In this document: positions 6,957 through 27,681 of the stretch, in pieces
Layout: every line of letters begins with the position of its first letter
Numbering within the stretch: the first letter of the stretch is position 1
Assembly (NCBI GenBank): GCA_013416795.1
Contig: RQSC01000008.1
Location: 374,743-405,205 of the forward strand
Origin: Prasinococcaceae sp. CCMP 1430
Taxonomy: Eukaryota; Plantae; Prasinodermophyta
Reading direction: 5' to 3'
Length of the DNA: 30,463 bases
Made by a program: the position numbers and the translations under genes
The notes under the pieces: model-generated
Database searches by the model: none
What the model saw: the letters and a program-made list of their open reading frames with translations, nothing else
Told to the model about the DNA's origin: nothing

Positions 6957-8411
6957 TTACGCGACGGCCTTGCCGGGGGCCACATCCTCCGTGTAGTACG
7001 CCGAGCCGCCGTGCTCGGTCGAGTCGAGGCCCTCCATCTCCTCCTCAGGCGATGCGCGCAGCATGTCCATCCTCTTGAGCGCGTAGAAGAGCAGGCCCTG
7101 CGTGGCCATCACCCACAGGAAGATGACGATGATGCCGACGATCTCGGCGGCCAGGAGCTTGCCGTTGCCGCCGTAGAAGATGCCGACGTCCTGGTCGCTC
7201 GAGTAGGCCTGAGCGACGTACTTGTCCGCCGCGAAGAGACCCACGACGATCAGGCCCCACGCGCCAGTGCAGCCGTGCAGCGCGATGGCGTCCACGGGGT
7301 CGTCGACGCGCAGCTTGTACAGGATGAACCACTTCGAGAAGAGGAAGACCAGCGCGCCGACAGCGCCCGCGATGATGGCCGCCCACGGCTCGAGCGTGGA
7401 GGTGCCGGCGGTGATGGCGACGAGGCCCGCCAGCGAGCCGTTGCAGCTCGTGACGAGGTCCCAGGTGCCGGTCTGGAACTTGCGCATGAAGAGCGTGGCG
7501 AGGCCCGCAGCCGCGCCCGAGAGCGTAGTCGTCACGGCGCAGCGGGCCACCACGTCGGCGTCGCTCGTGCTGGCGACGCCGAGCTGGGAGCCCGGGTTGA
7601 AGCCGTACCAGCCGAACCAAAGCAGGAAGGTGCCAAGCACGACGAGGGTGGCGGAGTGGCCGGGCATGTCAGCCACCTGGCCGTCCTGCGTGAAGCGGCC
7701 GATGCGCGGGCCGACCATGTACGCGCCGGCGAGCGCCGCGAAGCCACCCGTCATGTGCACGACGCCGCAGCCGGCGAAGTCGATCATGCCGTTCTTGAAG
7801 ATGGTCTTGTCGAAGTCGTTGGGGAAGGCGGTGAGCCAACCATCGCCGTCCCACACCCAGTGCACCACCACCGGGTACACGAAGCCGGTGAGGACGACCG
7901 AGTAGATCAGGTATGCGGAGAACGCCGTGCGCTCGGCCATCGCGCCCGACACGATGGTCGCCGCCGCGGCGGCGAACGCCCACTGGAAGAGCCACTCCTC
8001 CCAGCCCCTGTCGTTCAGGAAGTCGTGCAGGCCGTGGTGTCCAGCGCCGATGAAGGCCTTGGCATCCGAGTTGGGGCCGTACGCGAAGCCCCAGCCGAAG
8101 ACGTAGTACGCGATGGCGCCGGCGCACACGTCGATGACGTTCTTGAGCAGGATGTTCATGGTGTTCTTAGTGCGCACGGAGCCCGCGCACAGCATGGCGA
8201 AGCCCGCCTGCATGAGGAACACGAGGTAGGCTGAGGTGAGCAGGAAGGACGAGTTCACCGCGCCCGCGACCTCGGCGCTCGCGGCCGCCTGCTGGCACGT
8301 GAAGAGCAGCGTGGCCTGCGACGCGGCGTCTGCCTCTCCGATCGAGAGGAGGACCTCTTCCGTCAGCAGGTCCTCCGGGCATGCCGCCGTGATCTGGTCG
8401 AGGATCGCCAT
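6957..8411 (-). CDS. AMT1: Ammonium transporter, plant AMT1 type (484 aa)
   Basis: Motifs FLMQAGFAMLCAGSVRTKNTMN, FQWAFAAAAATIVSGAMAER, YPVVVHWVW, DFAGCGVVHMTGG, LWFGWYGFNPGS, DDPVDAIALHG and the C-terminal GLDSTEHGGSAY. The start is placed at ATG 8411; the extension to 8822 in the ORF track is low-complexity leader. Confidence 0.96.
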   Translation of the reverse strand: MAILDQITAACPEDLLTEEVLLSIGEADAASQATLLFTCQQAAASAEVAGAVNSSFLLTSAYLVFLMQAGFAMLCAGSVRTKNTMNILLKNVIDVCAGAIAYYVFGWGFAYGPNSDAKAFIGAGHHGLHDFLNDRGWEEWLFQWAFAAAAATIVSGAMAERTAFSAYLIYSVVLTGFVYPVVVHWVWDGDGWLTAFPNDFDKTIFKNGMIDFAGCGVVHMTGGFAALAGAYMVGPRIGRFTQDGQVADMPGHSATLVVLGTFLLWFGWYGFNPGSQLGVASTSDADVVARCAVTTTLSGAAAGLATLFMRKFQTGTWDLVTSCNGSLAGLVAITAGTSTLEPWAAIIAGAVGALVFLFSKWFILYKLRVDDPVDAIALHGCTGAWGLIVVGLFAADKYVAQAYSSDQDVGIFYGGNGKLLAAEIVGIIVIFLWVMATQGLLFYALKRMDMLRASPEEEMEGLDSTEHGGSAYYTEDVAPGKAVA

Positions 8412-9181
8412 GGTAACCGCTGGGGAGGGAGGCGTGGAACCTCTCCTCGGCGGCCCACCCGCGCGTGTCGGCACGTGCGGAGTGTGGCGCGCGCGCCCCA
8501 CCCGGCCGGGCCCGCCCCCTCCCCCCCCGCGCGCGCTCGCACGCGCGCGCGCAGAGCCTCGCGCGACGCCCCGGGTGGAGGGGCTTCGCGGAATCCCGCA
8601 GAATCCTGTGCCTCTCGAAGCCATCATCTCCCACCGATCCTGCGCGCGCCGATACCGCGCCGATACAGCGCCGGCGCCGGCGCCGCGCCGTCTCCCGGCC
8701 GTCTCCCCGCCTGCGCCGAGCCGCCGCCGCCGCAGCGCGCGGGCGACGCTGCGCGCAGGACGCGCTGCGGGGCAGGGCGCGCGCGCGCCTCGGGGAACGC
8801 CGATTTCCCAATCCATTTTCAATAGGAAATCAATTTAATGACACGTCAAATGTATGCTATAAAACAACAGAATGTGTAAATTGAAATGGTTCACTGCGAA
8901 ATATTTCGTCGGCCGCGGCCGCGTTCGCGCTGTCGCGTGTGGTGGCCGTCGCCGTCGCGGTTCCCCCGCGCGCGCGCCGGGTTCGCGCGCGGCGGCTCGC
9001 GCCGGGCCGCTCGTACGCCCTCGGGTGATGGAGGATTCCACCAGTGGGTTCCACCGAGCGCGGCTCGCGCCTCCGTCGGCGCGCAGGCAGCGCCCCTCCC
9101 GTCGCCAGACGCCGGGCCCAGCACCAGAGCCGGGCGAGGGATCCCACGTGCGTCGACGCCCCAGAGAAAAAGATCCGTTGC

Positions 9182-9792: not shown

Positions 9793-12700
9793 TCACGGCG
9801 CGGCCTCAAAGTCGTACTGGGCGAACTCGGACGACGCGAGGAAGGCATCCGGATCAGCCTTGGGCAACGCCACGCCCACCACCGCGCGCCCGGACAGCAG
9901 CGGAACAACGCTCTTGTACGACACCGAGATGGCTTGAGTGTCGAGGTCGAACTCCACCTGGAAGGTGTTGTGTCCGGGGTAGTCCGACACCTTCGATTCA
10001 CTGACCGCTGGGACCTGGGAGTACGTCACGAACGCCTTCGATCCCTCCTTGCTCACGTAGACGTGGCCACCCATCGACACGTCGAGGTTCGCGTACAGCG
10101 CGGAGATGGCGAACCCAGCCGAGCGCTTGTTGCTGAAGTGCGTGTCCAGGCCGGGGCTGAGAGACTTCTTGGACTTCCCCAACGCCACGTATCCCTGCGC
10201 GCCCACGTAGAACTTTTTGAAGCTCTTCACCTTGCCGGCCTTGCCCTTCTTGCCGGGCTGGTACGACTTGAACTTGCCTCCGGGAATGGACACCTTCACC
10301 GCGCCGCCCTTGCGCAGCTTCTTGGCGTAGTTCTTGCCCGTCTGGGCGTACGTTGTGTGCGGCAGGACGTAGGCACTGCCATCGAACTCCAGTCCCTGCT
10401 CCGTGACACTCCACGTGTCGCCGCCCGGGCGAGGCGTGAAGGTGAGGCGCTTGCCCTCGAGGGAAGTTGTGGAGTTGATAATGCCGGTCGGTAGACCGCA
10501 GCTAGGCAGGTACACGAAGTCCGACTCGGCCGCCGCGCAGCTGCGCGCGACGGGCATCGAAGGCCTGGTGGGCGCGCACACGCACGTCGGCTCTCCCGTG
10601 GTCGGGTCGAGCGGCGGCGAGCACGTGAGCGTGCCCGTGCGCACGGGGCGTAGCAAGGGGGCGCCCGTGGCGTCGGTGTGGTACTCGTCGGTGCGCGCAC
10701 CGCACACCACCGAGCCAATCGGCGGGCAGCTCACGTCCCAGTCCTCCTGCGTGTACGCATCGTCGCCGCACTCGGCCAGCTCCGCTGGCTGGTCGGCGAG
10801 CGCGAGCTTGGCGGCGCCCCAGAGGTCGGCGTCGACGCTGAGGATCTTGTTGGCTGTGGCCTCGACGTTGGACGCCTCGTCCTCGTAGCCGGTTCCGCCC
10901 CAGGCCGCGGGGTTCAGTCCAAACACGCTGCCCGTCTGCGCAGCGGCGTCAATGTACGCCTTCACCTCCTCTGGGGTCGCATCAGGATACGCCTCGAGCA
11001 CGAGCGCCGCCACGCCCGCAACGAAGGGCGTCGCCATCGATGTGCCGCCAAGCGCTTCCGTGCAGGTGTCGCAGGGCTGCTTGGCGGCGTCCAGGGGGTA
11101 CGCGCTCAGGATGCCCGTGCCCGGTGCATAAATGTCGACGCAGCCGCCCCAGTTGGAGTAGAGCCCCTTCGAGTCGTCCACGTTAATCGCAGCGACGGTC
11201 ATGGGGGCGTCAGCCGATGCCGGAGTCGTGGTGCACGCGTCAATGTCCGCGTTTCCCGCAGCGACCGCCACGAACACGCCGGCGTCCACGAGGCTCTCCA
11301 CCACGCCATTTGCGGTCTCAGAGTACGACGACCCCAGCGACATCGTCGCCACCGCAGGCGCGCCGCCGGTGAGCTCTTCAAGGTTATCGATCAGGTACTG
11401 AACGCAGCGCGCGGTCATCGCAGTGTTGCCGGAGCCGTCGTCCTGGAGCACTTTGAGGGCGTGGATGGTGACGCCTGGTGCCACCCCCCACGTTGTCCCG
11501 CCGACCGCCCCCGCGACGTGCGTGCCGTGGCCGTTGCCATCGGTCTGCGTGGTCACAATATCTGCGGAGGTGCAGTCGGCACCCGGACCTACCCGCCCTG
11601 TGAACTCTTCGTGGGTTTCGAGCACACCCGTGTCGAAGATGAAGGCGTGCACGCCAGCGCCAGTGAGTGCCGTGCCGTCGGTGGGAAGCTTCCACGAGCC
11701 GGTGGATTCGTCGTACGTGATGTCTCCTTCCGGCTGGTCGAGGCGGTCAAGCGCCCACGCCCACTCCTGCTTGCTCCACGCGGGGCCACCGTTCGTCGAG
11801 TACGCGCTCTGCTCGCAGGCTGGGATATCGCCACAGATCTCAGCACTCACAGCGCCATCGACCTCGATAATGCACCACGGCCTTCCGACACCGAAGAGGT
11901 CGCCCGGGTTGCGGCAAAACGGTCCGTCCTCGAGGCCGGCGCCAGGAAATCCCCTGGACGTGAGCTCGAGGCCACCAAAGGCGAGCGCCGGGGCCCGGTT
12001 CTCCAGGTCAATGCAGTTGTACGTAGCGCCGTTCTTGGTGATGGTGCCATGGGTGCCGCGATATGAGGCGGCCTTGTCCGTGATGAAGTAACACTCGGTC
12101 GCCCCGCCCTCCAAGCTCATCTGGGCCAGAGCGCGGCCATTGTCACCGTCGCGCTTGGCCTCGGAGCGAACCTTCGCAGCGTCCTGCGCCTTGCTCACCT
12201 CCGCGTGTAGGGCCTGCTTGGCCTCGGCGGGGAGTTCGGCGAGCGAGCGCTCGCGCTTGAGAGCGGCGCGGCGCCGGCGGCCGTGCGAGGTGCTCGCCAC
12301 CTGCGCGTGCACCTCGCCAAGTCGACGCATGTGCATCGACAACGCGTGCTCGTGCGACTCGATGAGGTGCGCGTGGTCGTGGTACGCAGGGGCGGTCACA
12401 CGACTGTCGGAGGCGACGGCCTCGAGGCCGAACGGCGAGGCGCCCGCATCGCAGTCGCCCGCACTCGCCGCGCGCTGCGCGAGGATGAAGGCGCCGAGGC
12501 CTTCCTTGGAAATGGTCGCAGCGGCAACGCCCGTGGTCGCTGCGCTCGCCGCAGCCGCCTCAGCGCCGCCTGTGCACGCGCCGCCGTAGCCGGCAAGCGC
12601 CGCGCACAGGCCCGCAGCGTCGGCGTCGGCGTCGGCGTCGAAGCGGAAGATCCACTCGTCTGCGGCGCCGTTCTCAAGCGCCGTCTCCGGGTTCCCCAAC

Positions 12701-13215
12701 GCAGCGTCGGGCAGCCCTTCAACTGGCAGCAGGCATTCGATGGTCTCCGCGACGAGCTGGGCGGCGAGAGAGCCGTCTGCTTCGCCGGTGATGAGGCGCG
12801 CGTCGACGGCGCCCGTGTGCACAATGTTGTCTACAGCGCCCTTGACTCTCTGCACGCCACTGGTGTCGGTGTCAACCTCGCGCACAAGCTCCACGACCGC
12901 AAATGTGAGACCGAAGTTGGCCAGGAGGAACAGGAAGACGACGACGGACAGCACGCCGACCACTCGCAGGAGCCTCTGTTTCTGCTCCCGCGTCTGGCGG
13001 TAGAGGTTGGCCGCGCTGTAGAGCTCTTGCAGTGAGATCGTGCCCGAATTGTCCAGGTCGAAGGCCTGCAGCGCCCCCTGCAGCTCGGGGGGCAGTGCGT
13101 CGTTGTTGTAGGCCATTTCGCTGCTGTCGCCCGACATGAACTTGATCGATTTGGTCGGGGCAAGCTTCGAATCGGTGCTCGCCGAGGGCACGGCGTCATC
13201 GCCTCCGCGCCCCAT
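9793..13215 (-). CDS. Type II membrane multidomain S8A (proteinase K-like) subtilisin: EF-hand, TM, kringle, S8, Cys-rich linker, NIDO-like domain (1140 aa)
   Basis: Start at MGRGGDD (ATG 13215). EF-hand loop DLDNSGTISLQEL; hydrophobic helix VVGVLSVVVFLFLLANFGLTFAVV; kringle-like CYF..YRG..C..FCRNP..PWC..C; catalytic FDTG, HGTHVAG and GTSMATP plus oxyanion AAGN; C-terminal FYVGAQGYV..ISALYANLD..GHVY..VTY..NTFQVEF resembling NIDO. Confidence 0.9.
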   Translation of the reverse strand: MGRGGDDAVPSASTDSKLAPTKSIKFMSGDSSEMAYNNDALPPELQGALQAFDLDNSGTISLQELYSAANLYRQTREQKQRLLRVVGVLSVVVFLFLLANFGLTFAVVELVREVDTDTSGVQRVKGAVDNIVHTGAVDARLITGEADGSLAAQLVAETIECLLPVEGLPDAALGNPETALENGAADEWIFRFDADADADAAGLCAALAGYGGACTGGAEAAAASAATTGVAAATISKEGLGAFILAQRAASAGDCDAGASPFGLEAVASDSRVTAPAYHDHAHLIESHEHALSMHMRRLGEVHAQVASTSHGRRRRAALKRERSLAELPAEAKQALHAEVSKAQDAAKVRSEAKRDGDNGRALAQMSLEGGATECYFITDKAASYRGTHGTITKNGATYNCIDLENRAPALAFGGLELTSRGFPGAGLEDGPFCRNPGDLFGVGRPWCIIEVDGAVSAEICGDIPACEQSAYSTNGGPAWSKQEWAWALDRLDQPEGDITYDESTGSWKLPTDGTALTGAGVHAFIFDTGVLETHEEFTGRVGPGADCTSADIVTTQTDGNGHGTHVAGAVGGTTWGVAPGVTIHALKVLQDDGSGNTAMTARCVQYLIDNLEELTGGAPAVATMSLGSSYSETANGVVESLVDAGVFVAVAAGNADIDACTTTPASADAPMTVAAINVDDSKGLYSNWGGCVDIYAPGTGILSAYPLDAAKQPCDTCTEALGGTSMATPFVAGVAALVLEAYPDATPEEVKAYIDAAAQTGSVFGLNPAAWGGTGYEDEASNVEATANKILSVDADLWGAAKLALADQPAELAECGDDAYTQEDWDVSCPPIGSVVCGARTDEYHTDATGAPLLRPVRTGTLTCSPPLDPTTGEPTCVCAPTRPSMPVARSCAAAESDFVYLPSCGLPTGIINSTTSLEGKRLTFTPRPGGDTWSVTEQGLEFDGSAYVLPHTTYAQTGKNYAKKLRKGGAVKVSIPGGKFKSYQPGKKGKAGKVKSFKKFYVGAQGYVALGKSKKSLSPGLDTHFSNKRSAGFAISALYANLDVSMGGHVYVSKEGSKAFVTYSQVPAVSESKVSDYPGHNTFQVEFDLDTQAISVSYKSVVPLLSGRAVVGVALPKADPDAFLASSEFAQYDFEAAP

Positions 13216-13291
13216 CTCCGCGCGCGCGCCGTGGCCGCCTCGCCCCCCAACCGCCGCGCCGACTACGGCGCCGTGGCGCGCCGCCGCCGCC

Positions 13292-13408
13292 NNNNNNNNN
13301 NNNNNNNNNNNNNNNNNNNNNNNNNNNNNNNNNNNNNNNNNNNNNNNNNNNNNNNNNNNNNNNNNNNNNNNNNNNNNNNNNNNNNNNNNNNNNNNNNNNN
13401 NNNNNNNN
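13292..13408. other. Assembly gap (117 N)
   Basis: Run of N. Confidence 1.
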
Positions 13409-13601
13409 CCGCCAAAAAAAAAAAAAAAAGCTAACAAAAAATCCCCCCGGCCCCGATACCGGCACGGCACGGCGCGCGCGCATACTTGGGGTGAGAATCC
13501 GCAGAGCGCGCGCAAAGTACCTCAACATACGTAAGATACAAACCCTACATAGTTAAGGTTTGGAGCGGCGCGGAAGCCCGCCCTGCTGCGGCCGTGGTGC
13601 G

Positions 13602-13627
13602 GCGCGCGCGCGCGCGCGCGCGCGCGC
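13602..13627. repeat. (GC)13 dinucleotide run
   Basis: Seen directly in the sequence. Confidence 0.95.
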
Positions 13628-14048
13628 CGCGCCGCGCGGGGGAACCGAGCGCCATCAAATCGAATGCGTCGTCTGCCGAGCCTATTCGAACTGATCTGGG
13701 AGAGGCGCTTCACCAAATAGAATCTAATGCATGCGGATACAATGCGATCTGATGGAGGAAAAGAAAGCCATCAAAGTGAAAGCGTGGTCTGCGGAGCAGT
13801 CAGATCGCAGTGGATGCGCGATCGCGCCCCCTCGCAACGCGTCAGATAGACCCGTTTTTACGATAACCGTAAATATATTAAACCGGAAGGCGGGACGGAC
13901 GTAGCGCCGCGGCGGGAGCGACTGCGCGGTGCAGTGCCGGACGGCGCGCGCGAGGACGCCCCCCCCATGGGCGGCGCGGCGTCCTCCCTTGCCTCGGAAG
14001 GTGGGGGGTGCCCCGCATGCCTGAGGCCCGGGGTGGGCGCGGCTCCTC

Positions 14049-16644
14049 TCAGCGCCGCCCGCCCATCTTGAGCTTCTTCTTCAGTCGGTCGCGCACCGAC
14101 AGCTTCGGGGGCGCCTTGGCCTTGGGCGGCGCCCGCGCCTTGGGCTGCTTGGCGGGGCCGTTCGAGCTCTCCTTGCGGGACAGGTCGAGGCCTGCCCCGT
14201 AAGAGAAGTGCGCGGCACAGATCGTCAGTCTCAGCGCGCCGTCCTTGGGGAGATTGTCGGCGCACCGAACAGGCGAGCGGCTGAGCGAGGCGCGCGCGCG
14301 CAGATGCAAGCGTACCGTCCCGATCGGCGTCGAAGGCGTCGTTGTCCAGCTGCATGTCCTGGGCCGTCGGGAGGCTCGGCGAGCCGGTGACCTCCTGAGG
14401 TGGCTTCCATTCGCCCCCGTCCGAGGTCCCGAGGCGCGCGCCAGCAGCCTTCGCGGCAGACTCGCCGGCCACCCCTTTGGAGCTCTTGACGCTGATCTTC
14501 GCCTTGAGGTTGAGCTTGAGCTTCACAGGCGCCTTTGGGTTCAGCGCTGAAGCCTGCGCCTGTTCCTCCTTCGCTGCCTTGGCGATCTCCTCGCGCGCGT
14601 TGAACCACTCAGCCATCTTTTCCATGCCACGATCGATCGCCTCCTGCCCGAGCTCCGCGTACAGGCTTTCGACCACCCCCCTGGCTTCGAGCTTGGTCAT
14701 CAACGCGCCCGTGGTGCGTTGGCCGAGCCATTGCTGCAGAGTCAATAAGAGGCAAGGAAGCCCCGCCATCTCCGTCTCTGTGATTGAGCCAGAGATGCTG
14801 TTGCCATCACTCGCACCGTTGGGCACGGGCAGGCTAGCGCGGGCCGCGTCTGGCATGGCCGGCTCTGGCATCTCCGCCGCGGCAAGGTGCACGCCCCCGT
14901 CCTGTGCAACGCCCTGCACCTTGGCGTCGGCTGGCGTCTCGTCCGAGCCCTGCCCGGCGTCTCCTCCCTCGCCCGGCCGCTTCTCCTGCTGCGTTCCGCC
15001 GTCCCCCTCCTCCTCATTCTCCTGCTGCTGCTGCTGCTGCTGTTTTTGCTGCGTGTCGGCCGATGGCGCGGCCTCTGGCACCGCTGTCTTGATCTTCAGC
15101 GTGATCTTTGGCCGCGTTTGCGCGGGCGTTGGCTCCGCCGCGTCCGCGGACCGGTCGTCCCCATCCTCGCCGGCAGTGCCGCCTGCGCCCGGCGCCCGGC
15201 CGGCAACGGCAGTCGCAAGGGCGTCTGACGCACCACCCTCGCCCACGACCTCCTCAGCTGCTGCTACTGTCGCCTCGCTGGCCGCACCCGCCTGGGGGGC
15301 TCTGTCCTGCGCCCCGCCGCTGGCTGGAGGCGTCTCCTGCTTGACACGTTCCTCGCCCTCGGGCCTTTGGGCCACGGCCGTTGCGGCGCCATCCGCCCCC
15401 GATATCTTCAGCTTGAGCTTGATCGCCTTGCGCTGCTTTGGCGGCGGCTCGGCGGCGCCCTTGGCGTCGTTGTCGCCCTCGCTTGACGCGCCCCCTGCCG
15501 CTGCGGGCTTCTTGAGAGTGAGGGCCAGCTTGCGCTTTCCGGGATTCTTGGCGGCGTGCAGCAGTCCAGCGTATCGATCCGCGGCGAACCACATGAGCTC
15601 ACGGTAACGCGGGTAGCGGAAGGTGCTCTTCACGCCCAGCCTGTCTTCCATGCTCCAGCACGCCAGCTGCACGAAGAGATCATGGCCGTGGAGAAAGTTG
15701 CCCCCAATGACCACCGAGTCCTCCTCGGTTGTGACCGCGTGCGGCCAGCCGCCGGGCAGGAAGACGGTGTCGCCCGCGCCGACCTCGACGCGCATGCAGT
15801 CGTGCGCCGAGTCCGCGTAGAACGTCGTGCGCTGCCGCGACGAGCCCGCCCATGCCTCGAACGCCGCGTGGTTGGCAGCGTCAGGTGGCGCGAGCAGGAA
15901 GGTCTTGTGGCCGCTCAGGACGTGGTACCATACCGAGGACCCGCCGAAGTCCACGTGAAAGTCCGTGTAAGCGCCCGCGGGGCTGAGCAGTGCGTACAGC
16001 AGCGCCGACGGGGGCTCTTGCGCCGGCGGGGGAGGCCACACTTGCTCGACCAGGTCAAGCTCGCGCACGAGCGCCGGGATGACGATCTCCTCGTCCAGAA
16101 GCGTGCCCTTCAGTGGCAGGCTCACGCAGTTCAGCAACAGCTCGCGCTCGGCCGCGGGCGCCTCCAAGTAGGCGGCGTACTGCTCGAGGGTCTGGCGTGG
16201 GCCAGGCTCCTGCGTGGTGCACTCGATGGTGTCCACGGGCGTGTCCGGGCCGACCGCGGCGACGATGCCGCGCAGCGTGAGGAGCGCCTCGTCCGCCGGG
16301 AGCGCCATGCCCAGGCCCGCGGCGCCGCCTGCGGCGGCCGACACCACAATGGGCTCGCGGAAGCCCACGCCGGTGCGCCGCAGGCTCTCGAGGCGGACGT
16401 CGTGGGCGGCCATGCGCCGCGGCTCCCCCTTGGACGCTGCCGCGCGCAGACGCTTGCTCAGCGCGGCCGGGTCGATCTTCGGCGCGCCCGTCCTGCGCTG
16501 CTTGCGCTTGCCCCCCCAGGCCGCAGCGCCCGCAGCGGCCGCCGCCGCGTCGAGCTCGGCGTAGAGCTCCTCCTCGTCCGACGACAGGCCATCGAGCTCG
16601 TGGTAGTTCACGCGGGTCCGCTCGCGCATGGGGTACGACGACAT
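14049..16644 (-). CDS. JmjC histone demethylase, JHDM1/KDM2-KDM7-like, without recognisable PHD/CXXC (823 aa)
   Basis: Exon 1 is 16644-14316. Intron 14315-14192 is GTACGC..CTGAC..GCAG, phase 1. Exon 2 is 14191-14049. The joined CDS is 2472 nt and in frame. YTDFHVDFGGSSVWYHVLSGHKTF and GGWPHAVTTEEDSVVIGGNFLH supply the HxD...H iron ligands. Confidence 0.92.
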
Positions 16645-16959
16645 GCCGTGCAGCGCGCGTGTGTGTCTGGGTGGGAGGGGTGCGAGGGCTGGAAGGGAGG
16701 GCGGGGGGAGGAGGCGCTGCCGCGCCTGTTGGCGGGCGCCCCCGCCGGCGCCGCCCCCCCGCCCCCCCCGGCGGCGCGCCGAGGCGCGCTCCTCTGAGGA
16801 GCTCTCCGAGGCGCCCGAAGTCCCGCCCGCGGACACCCGCAGGCCCCGCCTCGAAGGCACGTACAAAGGGGGGGGGGGGGGGGAGAGAGCGCGCTGTGGC
16901 ACGCACCCGCTTCGAACGCGCTCGCAACAGCCGCGCTGCGCTCGGGAGCATTCACACGT

Positions 16960-21952: not shown

Positions 21953-21966
21953 GTGTTCTAGAACAC
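21953..21966. promoter_or_regulatory. Heat-shock-element core in a 14-bp palindrome (GTGTTCTAGAACAC) upstream of HSP70
   Basis: Contains nTTCnnGAAn, the established HSF-binding inverted pentamer pair, directly 5' of the HSP70 gene. Confidence 0.65.
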
Positions 21967-22013
21967 GCGCGCGGCGCGCGTGGCGGAGAGCTCCCGGCTC
22001 ACCTCTGCCAGCC

Positions 22014-22014
22014 N
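22014..22014. other. Single N, probable scaffold junction
   Basis: Sits between the HSP70 promoter and the 3' half of its intron, where exon 1 should be. Confidence 0.8.
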
Positions 22015-22103
22015 GCCGCCGCGCGCCGCCGCGCGCGCGCGAACGCGCGAGGTGGCGCTCGCCGATCGCGTGCTGACGGCCGCCGCCGCCCTTGCCTCCC
22101 TCC

Positions 22104-22134
<31 letters not shown>

Positions 22135-22138
22135 ACAG

Positions 22139-24033
22139 AGATCATCGCCAACGACCAGGGCAACCGCACGACCCCGTCGTACGTGGCCTTCACCGACAGC
22201 GAGCGCCTGATCGGCGATGCCGCCAAGAACCAGGTGGCGATGAACCCGATCAACACCGTCTTCGACGCCAAGCGCCTCATCGGCCGCAAGTTCTCGGACG
22301 CGGCCGTGCAGTCGGACATCAAGCTGTGGCCGTTCAAGGTCGAGTCCGGCGCGGCTGAGAAGCCCATGATCAAGGTGACCTTCAAGGGCGAGGAGAAGCA
22401 GTTCGCCGCCGAGGAGGTCTCGTCCATGGTGCTCATCAAGATGAAGGAGATCGCCGAGGCCTTCCTGGGCAAGGAGGTCAAGAACGCCGTCGTCACCGTG
22501 CCGGCGTACTTCAACGACTCGCAGCGCCAGGCGACCAAGGACGCCGGCGTCATCGCGGGCCTCAACGTGATGCGCATCATCAACGAGCCCACCGCCGCCG
22601 CCATCGCCTACGGCCTCGACAAGAAGGACTCGTCGGCGGGCGAGCGCAACGTGCTCATCTTCGACCTCGGCGGCGGCACCTTCGATGTGTCGCTGCTGAC
22701 CATCGAGGAGGGCATCTTCGAGGTCAAGTCGACCAACGGCGACACCCACCTCGGCGGCGAGGACTTCGACAACCGCCTGGTCAACCACTTCGTCCAGGAG
22801 TTCAAGCGCAAGAACAAGAAGGACATCACCGGCAGCGCCCGCGCGCTCCGCCGCCTGCGCACCGCGTGCGAGCGCGCGAAGCGCACGCTCTCGTCGACCG
22901 CGCAGACCTCGATCGAGATCGACTCGCTCTTCGAGGGCATCGACTTCTACTCGTCGATCACCCGCGCGCGCTTCGAGGAGCTGAACATGGACATGTTCCG
23001 CCGCTGCATGGACCCCGTGGAGAAGTGCCTCCGCGACGCCAAGTTCGACAAGGCCTCCGTGCACGACGTGGTGCTCGTGGGCGGCTCCACGCGCATCCCC
23101 AAGATCCAGACGCTGCTGCAGGACTTCTTCAACGGCAAGGAGCTGTGCAAGTCGATCAACCCCGACGAGGCCGTCGCGTACGGCGCCGCCGTGCAGGCCG
23201 CCATTCTGTCGGGCGAGGGCTCGGAGAAGGTGCAGGACCTGCTGCTGCTCGACGTGACCCCGCTGTCGATGGGCCTGGAGACGGCCGGCGGCGTGATGAC
23301 CGTGCTCATCCCCCGCAACACGACCATCCCCACCAAGAAGGAGCAGGTCTTCTCGACCTACGCCGACAACCAGCCGGGCGTGCTCATCCAGGTGTACGAG
23401 GGCGAGCGCTCGCGCACCCGCGACAACAACCTGCTGGGCAAGTTCGAGCTGTCGGGCATCCCGCCCGCGCCGCGCGGCGTGCCGCAGATCACGGTGTGCT
23501 TCGACATCGACGCCAACGGCATCCTGAACGTGAGCGCCGAGGACAAGACCACCGGCCAGAAAAACAAGATCACCATCACCAACGACAAGGGCCGCTTGTC
23601 GAAGGATGACATCGAGCGCATGGTCCAGGAGGCCGAGAAGTACAAGGCGGAGGACGAGGAGCACAAGAAGAAGGTGGACGCCAAGAACGCCCTCGAGAAC
23701 TACGCGTACAACATGCGGAACACCATCAAGGACGACAAGGTGGCCGACAAGCTCGACGCGGCGGACAAGGAGACCATCGAGAAGGCCGTGGAGTCGACCA
23801 TCGAGTGGCTCGACGCGAACCAGCTGGCGGAGATCGACGAGCTTGAGGACAAGCTCAAGGAGCTGGAGGGCATCTGCAACCCCATCGTCAGCAAGATGTA
23901 CGCGGCTGCTGGCGGCGGCGCGCCGGGCGCCGAGGGCGGCATGCCGGACATGGGCGGCGCGGGCGGTTTCGGCGGCGCGGCTGCGCCCGACGCCGGCGCG
24001 GGCGCCGGCCCGAAGATCGAGGAGGTCGACTAA
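22139..24033 (+). CDS. HSP70: Cytosolic HSP70, 5'-partial (exon 1 absent from the assembly)
   Basis: Acceptor CAACAG at 22138, then (E)[47 protein letters not shown] and C-terminal GPKIEEVD-stop. The N-terminal GIDLGTTYS segment is not in the window. Confidence 0.98.
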
Positions 24034-25117: not shown

Positions 25118-26402
25118 TTACATGATCTCCAGGCCGGCCTGGATCTGCCCCCACCCGATGAGGCGCCAGTGTTTGTCCACGCGGCGCGACAGCGCGACCT
25201 TCTCGCCGGCCTTGGTGCACACCGGCGAGGTGAGCACCAGCTTGGCGAGGTCCCCCTTGACGGCCGCCACGCGCGCGCCCGTGCACATCGAGCCGATGTT
25301 GAGCATGAGAACCTCGTTCTTGCTCAGCTTGGACACCTTGGACTGCTTCTCGCTGCCCTGCGTGCGCACGCCCAGCAGCCTGCGCAGCAGGAAGAAGTTC
25401 ACCTCAAGCTCTGTGAACACCGCCGGCAGGTGGCCCGGCTCGCCCAGCACCTGGCCCACCAGCCTGTCCGCGCGCGTCAGCGTGGGGTCGATGGTCGTGC
25501 CCACGCCGATCAGACCACCCGGCACCGCGTACTGCAGCTCGTTGCTCTCCGCGAAGAGCGACACGATGCGCGACATGATGGGCGTGCACTTGATGCGCCC
25601 GTCGTTGTCCTTGCTGACGATGCCGGGGCGCACCTCGACCTTCTGGCCCATGCGCAGCACGCCCTGCAGGATGGAGCCACCCGCCACGCCGCCCTGGATC
25701 TCGTCCACCTCCGCGCCGGGCTTGTTGACGTCGAACGAGCGGATGACGATCATGTTGGGCATGGAGGTGAAGTCGCGCACGGGCACGGGGATCTTCTTGC
25801 AGATGTACTCGGCGACGACGTCGATGTTGTACTTCAGCTGCGCGGAGATGGGCACCACCGGCGCGTCGTCGGCGATAGTGCCCTTGACGAACTTGCGGAT
25901 GGTTTCGTGCTGGTTCATGGCGGCGGCCTCCTGCACCAGATCGATCTTGTTCTGCAGGATGATGATGTGCTTGAGCTTCATGATCTCGACGGCGGCGAGG
26001 TGCTCCGAGGTCTGCGGCTGCGGGCACGACTCGTTGCCAGCGATGAGCAGCAGCGCGCCGTCCATCACGGCGGCGCCGTTAAGCATGGTAGCCATCAGAA
26101 TGTCGTGACCGGGGCAGTCGACGAACGACACGTGCCGCTGCAGAACCATCTTCTTGTCCTCGAAGCCCGGGACCTCGCACATGGGCGAGTCCTCCTTGGC
26201 CGAGCCGTACGTGCGGTAGCACTGCGGGCGCGGGCAAGCGTCGTCCTCGCACTTGTAGATCTTGGCGTTCGCGTAGCCGAGCTTGATGGTGATGTTGCGC
26301 TCGAGCTCGTTCTTGAAGCGGACGGTCTGCACGCCCGAGATGGCCTTCACGACGGTCGACTTGCCGTGTGCCACATGGCCTGCGCGTGAGCAAATGAGGC
26401 AA

Positions 26403-26452
<50 letters not shown>

Positions 26453-27149
26453 GGGGGAGGGCGCACGCAAGCGCGTGGCGGAGAATACGGGAGCGCGGCG
26501 CGCAGCAGAGCGCAACGCGACGACGGCGCTCATGACGTCAGCGCCGCGCCGACGCGCGCCCATGGGGACCAATCGCCTCGCCCTCATCGGTGCGCTCACG
26601 CGGCCGCCGCGGCTGGCGCTGTGCCGCCCCGCCCCGCCTGCAGCGGCGCACGCAGGCGAAAGCACCCCCGAGGACATGACCGGCGCGACCGCATCGCAGC
26701 GCACGCCTCCGTGTCCGCCCCACACCTCGCCGTCCCGCCCTGCTCGCGCCCCCACGGCCGGCCGCTCGCCTGGTGCTGCATGCAATGCATCGCGTCGCCC
26801 CTCGGCCGGCTCTGCCGCGCGGTGCGCCACGGGCCTCGGCGAGGGCCCGCCCGCGAGCGCGGGCGCCGCATACATTGACAATGGTGACGGATGGACGCGC
26901 GGGCGTGCGGGTGGCGTGGCGGCGCTGACAGAGCGGGCAGCGGCGGCGGCCGCTGGCGCCGCCGCCGGCGCGCCGGCCCAGGAAAAAAAACAAACCCTAC
27001 GGCGGCCGCCGGCGCTCCTCCCGCGCGCACGCACCGATCGTGCCGATGTTGATCGTCGCCTGGCGCGAGATGACCTCGGGCGTGAGCGGCGTGAGCGAGC
27101 CCACGTCGAGGTTGTCCAGGGACTGCACCGACAGCCCGTCCGACGCCAT
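25118..27149 (-). CDS. EIF2S3: Translation initiation factor eIF2 gamma subunit (458 aa)
   Basis: Exon 1 is 27149-27035 ([18 protein letters not shown]). Intron 27034-26380 is GTGCGT..GCAG. Exon 2 is 26379-25118. Motifs [46 protein letters not shown] and HWRLIGWG. Confidence 0.98.
26403..26451. repeat. Poly-G49 (poly-C on the transcript) near the eIF2-gamma intron acceptor
   Basis: Seen directly. The length may be a sequencing artefact. Confidence 0.85.
26992..26999 (+). promoter_or_regulatory. Telo-box (AAACCCTA) at the 5' end of the eIF2-gamma intron
   Basis: Exact motif. Telo-boxes are established in the 5' regions of plant translation-machinery genes. Confidence 0.55.
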
Positions 27150-27681
27150 CTCCTCCGAAGGGGCGGAGAGGGGAGGGGAGGGGGGAGGCGCGCCGCGCGC
27201 GCGGTGTGGTGGCGCACCCGCGCCGCATTGGCCGTAAAAATTGAAAAATAAAAATACACCGTCAAAATGCACGCGAGCCGCAGGTCAAAACGAGACCCCT
27301 TTTTTCCCTCGCCGCGCATTTCCCGCGAAAAAGGCCGACGGAAAGCTTTTAAAAAAAAAGGCCCCGCGGGGCGCATGCACTTATTCGTCCGACGCGGCGC
27401 AAAAAAAACAAATCAAAGTCATCAAAAATCAAAATAAAAAAAAATCGGGCGCCGCCGGCGGCGCCATCCATTCGCCGCGCCGGGGGCAAAATTCGCCTCG
27501 CGCGTCAGGATTCATTTTGACGTATCTTAGAGCTCTCCCGCTCTCCCGTGGGGGAAATCTTGTGTTGATGGCGCTTGATGCGCTTGATGGCGGGCGCCAC
27601 AGAGCGCGCGCGCGGCGCTCAACCCCCCCCCCTCCCTTCCCTCCCTTCCCTCCCCCTTCCCCCCTCAGGAGGGAGCGCGCG

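Follow-up and report, generated by a model that had tools for sequence, protein, structure and literature searches.

Subtilases are among the best-studied proteases, and their proteinase K branch is a textbook case of folding that depends on an I9 propeptide next to the enzyme. The described S8A enzymes of this type (proteinase K, aqualysin I, the Vibrio and Serratia proteinases, and ProteinT/PAM) have a common D-H-S triad, an oxyanion Asn and a conserved Cys pair; they are secreted and carry the I9 domain directly before the mature N-terminus. Here we analyse a gene of Prasinococcaceae sp. CCMP 1430 located at positions 9793-13215 (minus strand) of a 30,463-nucleotide stretch of contig RQSC01000008.1, the whole of which is called the window below. 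The encoded protein has the same kind of catalytic domain, whereas a kringle occupies the place of the I9 domain, and the chain is anchored by a transmembrane helix with an EF-hand. Judged from sequence, this is probably a real single-exon gene for a type II membrane-anchored subtilase of an early-diverging marine green alga. Its best explanation as a whole, to which we assign a probability of about 0.6, is a membrane-anchored pro-subtilase with a divergent prodomain acting in cis from the stalk and a kringle inserted before the S8 domain. The novelty lies in a rare, conserved combination of known modules, as read from the sequences, on a proteinase K-type subtilase.

The original prediction for this locus had listed an open reading frame (ORF) with an EF-hand, a transmembrane segment, basic sites, a kringle, an S8 domain, a Cys-rich linker and a NIDO-like domain. 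Its coordinates and each of these modules were recovered, and the domain order with the predicted type II topology, as well as the intact proteinase K-like S8 domain, hold in our analysis. From the 5' end of the gene, the features are as follows (aa, amino acid residues; pLDDT, predicted local distance difference test, the confidence score of the AlphaFold2 (AF2) model).

9793-13215, minus strand: complete intronless coding sequence, 1140 aa plus stop (translation; upstream stop in the Tara Oceans scaffold L002; full length kept in relatives P0002, P0003 and P0030)
13000-13092, minus strand: single EF-hand, aa 42-72, with the calcium-binding loop at aa 53-64 (PROSITE-type pattern; predicted cytosolic)
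12892-12963, minus strand: single transmembrane helix or signal anchor, aa 85-108 (Kyte-Doolittle maximum 2.59)
12667-12891, minus strand: juxtamembrane stalk, aa 109-183 (invariant VKG...HTG.VDARL.T and E.CLLP; pLDDT mostly below 55)
12391-12666, minus strand: compact alpha/beta module that may be a divergent I9-like prodomain, aa 184-275 (AF2 pLDDT 74-93)
12100-12372, minus strand: linker, aa 282-372, His-rich at first, then basic and helical, with MRRLG, GRRRR and KRERS
11815-12093, minus strand: kringle with six Cys and the motifs CRNP and PWC, aa 375-467 (Pfam score below threshold here, above it in relatives)
11767-11814, minus strand: kringle-to-catalytic junction, aa 468-483, C-E-x-S-A-[YF], kept in five relatives
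10816-11766, minus strand: Peptidase S8A domain of proteinase K type, aa 484-800 (Pfam 6.2e-37; D528, H563, N655, S726)
10498-10770, minus strand: eight-Cys beta-rich linker, aa 816-906 (Cys positions; pLDDT 75-90)
9796-10473, minus strand: NIDO-like C-terminal domain, aa 915-1140 (profile-profile link to a NIDO-bearing group)

The catalytic domain scores 127.9 bits against the Pfam S8 cut-off of 21.8, and NCBIfam adds distant S8 models only, all under their cut-offs. The window protein has the complete triad and the oxyanion Asn, and all relatives retain them. The domain is modelled at pLDDT above 90 and superposes on structure 8c4z with a VIA-align Z of 43.7 (root mean square deviation, rmsd, 1.9 Å; 274 residues aligned); the proteinase K-type enzymes as a group give Z 41-44 at about 1.9 Å, and the VIA search with the full-length model returned the S8 domain only. 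In a phmmer search of PDB the matches were 8c4z (1.8e-52), aqualysin (3.7e-50), proteinase K (3e-35), PCSK9 (about 1e-32) and subtilisin Carlsberg (about 3e-26); identity is 40-46% to the active bacterial enzymes and 31-32% to PCSK9. Since the counterpart of model residue 484 is residue 5 in the mature enzymes, the kringle sits where a propeptide normally ends: it closes at C467, and the mature-type motif WALDRLDQ, which corresponds to mature residues 5-8, starts at aa 487. No I9 domain stands immediately upstream of this mature-type N-terminus.

The search for a prodomain therefore turns to the stalk, where aa ~184-275 are modelled as a small alpha/beta sandwich, a conserved module with four Cys. 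In the full-length AF2 model (mean pLDDT 75.4), residues 180-273 are predicted at pLDDT 74-93 in the order strand 187-192, helix 196-208, helix 217-228, strand 230-234, helix 237-250 and strand 264-273; compared with the beta-alpha-beta-beta-alpha-beta sandwich of I9, one expected strand is modelled as a helix. When the module was compared with PDB by Foldseek, subtilisin propeptides, pro-subtilisin E, POIA1 and the prodomain of the PAM protease appeared at ranks 1, 3, 4, 5, 10, 11, 16 and 41 (E 1.1-5), with target-normalised template modelling (TM) scores of 0.41-0.51. The PAM protease is also among the closest relatives of the catalytic domain. When the Foldseek list was realigned with VIA-align, the top place went to pro-subtilisin E (Z 4.4, 60 residues at an rmsd of 3.1 Å), with prosubtilisin BPN' chains next; propeptides or I9 domains took VIA ranks 1, 2, 4 and 8 of this list at Z 3.5-4.4. 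An exhaustive VIA scan of 48,161 representatives brought eight subtilase, kumamolisin or PCSK9 prodomains into the top 50, all at Z of 4.8 or less, and in an ESM Atlas shape search, made with a query that held no S8 sequence, five to six of the ten rows were S8, I9 or Fervidolysin_NPro clusters (TM-score 0.30-0.46).

Profile comparison points in the same direction. Seven stalk sequences were set against 106 I9 domains with hhalign; the resulting alignment (P 0.03, 81-87 columns) keeps register from one end of I9 to the other and pairs the strand WIFRF with YIVVL, then the two helices, and finally GLEAVASDSRV with the last strand V-x-Y-V-E-x-D. Right after the last strand of the module a motif [ST]-A-P-[AS]-[YH]-H (aa 274-279) is conserved. 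Subtilisin propeptides end in Ala/aromatic at P2-P1, and both this motif and C-E-x-S-A-[YF] at the junction resemble such ends; by this analogy the two may be autoprocessing sites. In addition, I9 is present in 45 of the other relatives of proteinase K type in our S8 tree, which are 60 proteins without NIDO, so the ancestor of the family likely bore an I9 domain too.

Several results weigh against such an identification. Pfam Inhibitor_I9 found no match anywhere in the window protein, and a custom I9 hidden Markov model (HMM) found none in any family member. Folded alone, the stalk is predicted poorly overall (mean pLDDT 54.6, core 70-86). No Foldseek match of the module to PDB reached E of 0.001 or less, the best being 1.1; individually its structural matches are non-significant, and ferredoxin-like folds such as RRM and ClpS score equally well. 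The Atlas feature search with the stalk module gave no usable match. The whole stalk compared by hhalign with five I9 domains gave nothing (probability 0.3%), and a five-sequence stalk core could be aligned to the 106 domains along no more than a short stretch (P 0.099). Finally, the gap of about 200 residues between the module and the catalytic domain is unlike that of any characterised I9 domain.

We favour a divergent I9-type module because these weak results converge, and consider it reasonably likely from the models and alignments that aa ~184-275 represent one. The original prediction had claimed that the protein lacks an I9 prodomain and that the kringle occupies the prodomain position. 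The former stands as far as Pfam is concerned, and is put in doubt by the weak resemblance of the stalk to subtilase propeptides; the latter stands in so far as the kringle adjoins the mature-type N-terminus, while an I9-like module is probably located upstream of it. The prediction had also named a stalk folding as a divergent I9 domain as what would speak against it, and our findings go about half of the way there, with signals that are weak and all in the same direction. Probably, then, the kringle has not replaced the prodomain but has come to lie between it, in a divergent form, and the catalytic domain.

The most serious alternative is that the enzyme truly has no prodomain, the stalk module being a spacer or a ligand-binding domain, and the kringle (or nothing) serving folding and latency. 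Some S8 groups, namely mycosins, TPP II and intracellular subtilisins, do function without I9, and the missing Pfam match, the null or marginal profile comparisons, the sub-significant fold matches shared with generic ferredoxin-like folds and the position of the kringle right beside the mature-type N-terminus would all be expected. It is much harder to see why subtilase propeptides should then rise to the top in three libraries among very many ferredoxin-like chains, why the alignment to I9 should run in register end to end, and why A-P-A-[YH] should be conserved just after the last strand, in the position where I9 propeptides end in their cleavage site; moreover, the nearest S8 relatives nearly all bear I9. 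We therefore regard this alternative as doubtful. A different view of the same module would have the protein cut itself once, as PCSK9 does, and keep the prodomain-like module bound, so that it acts as a membrane-tethered adhesion molecule or receptor through the kringle and NIDO. PCSK9 resembles the algal protein in that its S8 domain belongs to the same proteinase K subfamily (E about 1e-32, Z about 39), in its eukaryotic multidomain layout with a Cys-rich C-terminal part, and in a prodomain which in PCSK9 stays attached; the several binding modules of the algal protein, and a tether that could hold the prodomain in place, agree with this. PCSK9 differs in being soluble, in having a Pfam-level prodomain directly upstream, in lacking kringle, NIDO and EF-hand, and in acting by binding and not by catalysis. 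The intact and universally conserved catalytic residues, an identity to active bacterial enzymes which exceeds that to PCSK9, and an active site bearing no mark of blockage make such a non-catalytic role quite improbable.

Both of these views accept the gene as annotated. The ORF might instead fuse the gene of an EF-hand/transmembrane protein with that of a secreted protease, or owe part of its length to frames left open by chance. The window has a GC content of about 70% (0.67-0.70), and such DNA yields many long spurious ORFs: it is crowded with chance ORFs, dozens of them in the ORF list. The sole transcript-derived protein found covers only the 3' half of the orthologue. Against an artefact speaks the conservation of the region between the transmembrane helix and the kringle (aa 109-372), in which invariant motifs and four Cys are kept at the amino-acid level down to about 40% identity; the same order occurs in one ORF in at least six divergent sequences from contigs of 0.60-0.68 GC; and there is no stop or frame break in the 1140 codons of the coding sequence. 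Unlike the chance ORFs, this one has recognisable domains along its entire length from the ATG at 13215. We give an artefact very little credence.

The minus-strand frame is open throughout 9793..13515, and translation from the ATG at 13215 to the stop at 9793 gives 1140 aa plus stop. Just 5' of the gene lies an assembly gap (N run 13292-13408, 117 N), which is bridged by two Tara Oceans metagenome scaffolds (L001 and L002) with 99.4-99.6% DNA identity to the window over the protease gene. L002 has an in-frame stop upstream of the coding sequence, and the next ATG corresponds to window position 13215, which is for this reason the most likely start; the longer product called on the Tara scaffolds (P0001, 1187 aa) starts at GTG.

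To find out how rare the architecture is, S8 proteins were collected by a profile search of 1.84 billion representatives (133,582 proteins) and screened with custom module HMMs. The full architecture was found only in the cluster of the query itself, in P0030, P0003, P0031 taken together with the next ORF, and the P0034/P0222 cluster, and partly in P0114, where no NIDO-like end was detected. The unfamiliarity that the original prediction had sensed is thus real: the architecture is confined to a few 50%-identity clusters, and our literature search found no description of a kringle-subtilase or of a kringle with a subtilisin or subtilase in algae; a single paper came up for kringle with Prasinoderma, and its only tie to the alga is a citation of the genome paper. 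Most of the two-stretch matches P0032-P0068 were rejected as architecture relatives, as they are tandem double-S8 proteins.

The closest distinct relative, P0002, has 74% identity over the whole length and falls into one 90% cluster with UniRef entry A0A7S3B5C1 of Prasinoderma singulare. This entry is a fragment 99% identical to residues 642-1161 of P0002, and because it is derived from a transcriptome, the S8-to-NIDO part of the orthologue is expressed. The continuous ORF, conserved in at least seven divergent relatives, points, indirectly, to a single transcript for the EF-hand/transmembrane and protease parts. P0031 is interrupted within S8 by a gap of 74 nt (L004 2533-2607), the next ORF encoding what is missing of S8 together with the Cys linker and NIDO-like domain; the gap is probably an intron that the Prasinoderma gene does not have. 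The contigs of P0003 and P0031 have a GC content of 0.68, like Prasinoderma, whereas those of P0222, P0114 and P0030 have 0.60-0.63, which indicates that the family also occurs in other organisms. The Joint Genome Institute (JGI) contigs of the distant relatives showed no poly(A) tails.

A quick maximum-likelihood tree of 71 S8 domains places all EF-kringle proteins, together with the N-truncated P0063, on one side of a split with a Shimodaira-Hasegawa-like approximate likelihood ratio test (SH-aLRT) support of 98; the sample was made without P0001, P0031, P0034, P0064, P0069, all double-S8 proteins and weaker matches. The S8-TSP1-NIDO proteins (P0238, P0070, P0091 and P0125) lie outside the EF-kringle clade. 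Some of them have unusual compositions of their own: P0070, a metagenome protein of 1157 aa, unites Trypsin_2, S8, a TSP1 repeat and NIDO in one chain, while P0091 and P0125 have S8, TSP1, several NIDO-like repeats and a C-terminal transmembrane segment.

The non-catalytic modules are identified with varying ease, and Pfam speaks against three of the assignments when the window protein is scored by itself: EF-hand_1 gives E 3.9e-4 and 20.2 bits against a cut-off of 25.4, the kringle family (PF00051) 20.5 bits against 34.3, and NIDO (PF06119) no match at E of 1 or less in the protein, nor at 10 or less for the domain alone. The relatives supply what the single sequence does not. For the kringle, P0003 and P0030 exceed the cut-off (34.7 and 46.0 bits), the Cys framework (375, 401, 434, 448, 461 and 467) is complete in the window protein, the CRNP and PWC motifs are kept in six relatives, and a six-sequence family profile searched against PDB finds plasminogen (6.9e-36), HGF (3.8e-26) and kringle 2 of tPA (4e-14). 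The same profile matches uPA, prothrombin, ROR1/2, Kremen and apolipoprotein(a), with single kringles at 1e-14 to 1e-8. The junction that follows, a low-pLDDT loop at 469-481, may serve as a processing site.

The EF-hand loop fits a PROSITE-type pattern for which any match occurred in only 75 of 20,000 shuffles of the protein (0.4%), and five of the six relatives have a match in the same place. In the AF2 model helices flank the loop (43-50 and from 62 onward), the exiting helix being continuous with the transmembrane helix (H62-112). No EF-hand pair was found in the Prasinoderma-type proteins, which carry one loop. Before the transmembrane helix P0222 has two EF-hands and P0114 at least three (three pattern matches; Pfam 1.5e-13, EF-hand_7 51.3 bits); overall, the more distant marine eukaryotic relatives have two to four. 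The ancestor likely had an EF-hand pair of which one was kept in Prasinoderma, and the retention of one hand from a pair suggests pairing by dimerisation. This EF-hand may confer calcium regulation.

The transmembrane helix is found at the equivalent position in all relatives. Its N-terminal flank has five Arg/Lys and one Glu and its C-terminal flank four Asp/Glu and two Arg, a positive-inside bias which favours the N-in orientation, and the window protein has no N-terminal signal peptide. The N-terminal tail would accordingly be cytosolic and the disulfide-rich remainder lumenal or extracellular. Within the stalk, residues 109-183 are modelled with one helix at 144-161 and the rest mostly at pLDDT below 55; the motifs VKG, HTG.VDARL.T, E.CLLP and GDPET are nevertheless kept even in P0222 and P0114. 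Beyond the alpha/beta module, the linker is predicted at low confidence as three helices, with the basic sites MRRLG (aa 296-300), GRRRR (aa 312-316) and KRERS (aa 320-324); the basic cluster is kept in relatives, though its positions are not identical. The stalk of P0222 contains a long Asp/His-rich run (DHDDHD...).

Downstream of the catalytic domain, the eight-Cys linker takes the place that a TSP1 repeat has in related S8-NIDO proteins of algae. That it is itself a divergent TSP1 repeat was not supported, since hhalign gave P 0.35 to those TSP1 repeats. For the C-terminal domain, the hhalign comparison of the window subfamily with the group of homologous domains from other algal S8 proteins reached 99.7% (E 5e-27), and four of the 14 aligned domains of that group match Pfam NIDO, the best at 5.5e-10. 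P0070 is above the Pfam cut-off of 25 (32.9 bits) and P0003 below it (17.8 bits). The sequences thus argue for homology to bona fide NIDO domains by a transitive link, not a direct one. The first Atlas feature match for the domain is a NIDO cluster (score 0.89), which we treat as a lead only.

From these modules the following course of events may be proposed for a pro-subtilase with its prodomain in the stalk. The segment aa ~184-275 would fold and inhibit the catalytic domain in cis as a divergent I9-type propeptide, the kringle and the helical basic linker having been inserted between the two. Autoprocessing might then take place at APAY/H after the module or at SA[YF] after the kringle, or a convertase might cleave at the basic cluster; the prodomain would be left on a membrane stub and an active kringle-S8-NIDO or S8-NIDO ectodomain set free. 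The kringle and NIDO could dock the enzyme on wall or matrix glycoproteins, and we infer from this a possible role in wall and matrix remodelling or protein scavenging. The EF-hand may couple trafficking, dimerisation or release to cytosolic calcium. A bolder form of this scheme, which we put forward tentatively and consider unlikely, would amount to a mode of subtilase control not described before: the prodomain stays tethered to the membrane for good beside the cytosolic calcium sensor, with the inserted kringle between it and the catalytic domain, so that one calcium-gated cleavage would both activate and release the enzyme, the gating being exerted through EF-hand-driven dimerisation or trafficking; the protein would then be an independent, subtilisin-fold counterpart of the type II transmembrane serine proteases (TTSPs) in early green algae.

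The surroundings of the gene are unremarkable for a nuclear locus. The Prasinoderma coloniale genome has a GC content of 69.8% (PMC7455551), close to that of the window, and this value, taken with the P. singulare orthologue, suggests that the DNA belongs to P. coloniale or a very close Prasinoderma. Directly 3' of the protease gene, on the same strand, lies an ammonium transporter gene (6960-8822, minus strand; Pfam 4.4e-126); the pairing recurs on the Tara scaffold L001, which is of the same species and hence little informative, and a link to nitrogen scavenging would be speculative. Past the protease stop, the segment 8720-9400 aligns piecewise to the Tara scaffold at 93-96% identity, compared with 99.4% over the gene, and contains a short tandem repeat, seen in the ORF translations as repeated LCTI and CAKD. 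On the 5' side, the region 13292-13660 includes the 117-N gap, about 20 T in a row and a (GC)n run near 13600-13650, and the GC content falls to 0.57 in 13001-14000; 13292-13660 probably represents a promoter and 5' region that the protease gene has in common with the gene for a JmjC/cupin protein at 13861-16902 (minus strand). Farther away are the eIF2-gamma gene (25121-27376, minus strand) and two overlapping frames on opposite strands (21961-23664, minus; 22183-24030, plus), where a Pfam NAD-GH match (2.9e-141) lies antisense to an Hsp70 gene (8.7e-239); we take this match to belong to the known artefact family antisense to Hsp70 and not to represent a second gene. The neighbours are ordinary nuclear genes, and no sign of a mobile element or foreign island was seen around the protease gene.

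A conserved clade in which a kringle stands between a barely recognisable propeptide-like module and the protease is a natural experiment on the distance by which a propeptide can be displaced from its enzyme. It also adds evidence that early-diverging marine algae use "animal matrix" modules (kringle, NIDO and TSP1-type) at their surface. The host algae live in colonies embedded in a matrix and are common enough for Tara Oceans metagenomes to contain them, and the protein is a candidate wall- or matrix-remodelling or protein-scavenging enzyme of Prasinodermophyta.

Among known membrane proteases, the closest in logic are the animal TTSPs (hepsin, matriptase, corin and enteropeptidase), whose cytosolic tail, signal anchor, stem modules, protease on the C-terminal side and activation by stem cleavage correspond to the layout and processing predicted here; a homologous kringle is found in the kringle-bearing S1 proteases (plasminogen, tPA, uPA, prothrombin and neurotrypsin). 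The catalytic domain of both groups has the trypsin-type S1 fold while that of the algal protein is S8, so that they are analogues only, and neither a cytosolic EF-hand nor a NIDO domain behind the protease is known to us from any TTSP or kringle S1 protease. The algal protein would thus represent an independent subtilisin-based parallel to the membrane-anchored serine proteases of animals.

Subtilases which act at a membrane or at the algal wall are also known, namely SUB2 (an apicomplexan sheddase), S1P/SKI-1 and the Chlamydomonas sporangin. SUB2 and S1P have the type I orientation, each with its anchor at the C-terminus and a classical prodomain, and sporangin is soluble; to our knowledge none of them has an EF-hand, kringle or NIDO. 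Likened by description and not by sequence, they are the nearest functional precedents for a role in surface or wall remodelling. Related in composition are algal proteases of the S8-TSP1-NIDO type (P0238 of Diacronema lutheri, P0070, P0091 and P0125). They lack the EF-hand, N-terminal transmembrane helix, stalk and kringle, and their Cys-rich module is a recognisable TSP1 repeat; with the window protein they share the S8 domain, a Cys-rich module behind it and at least one homologous NIDO domain.

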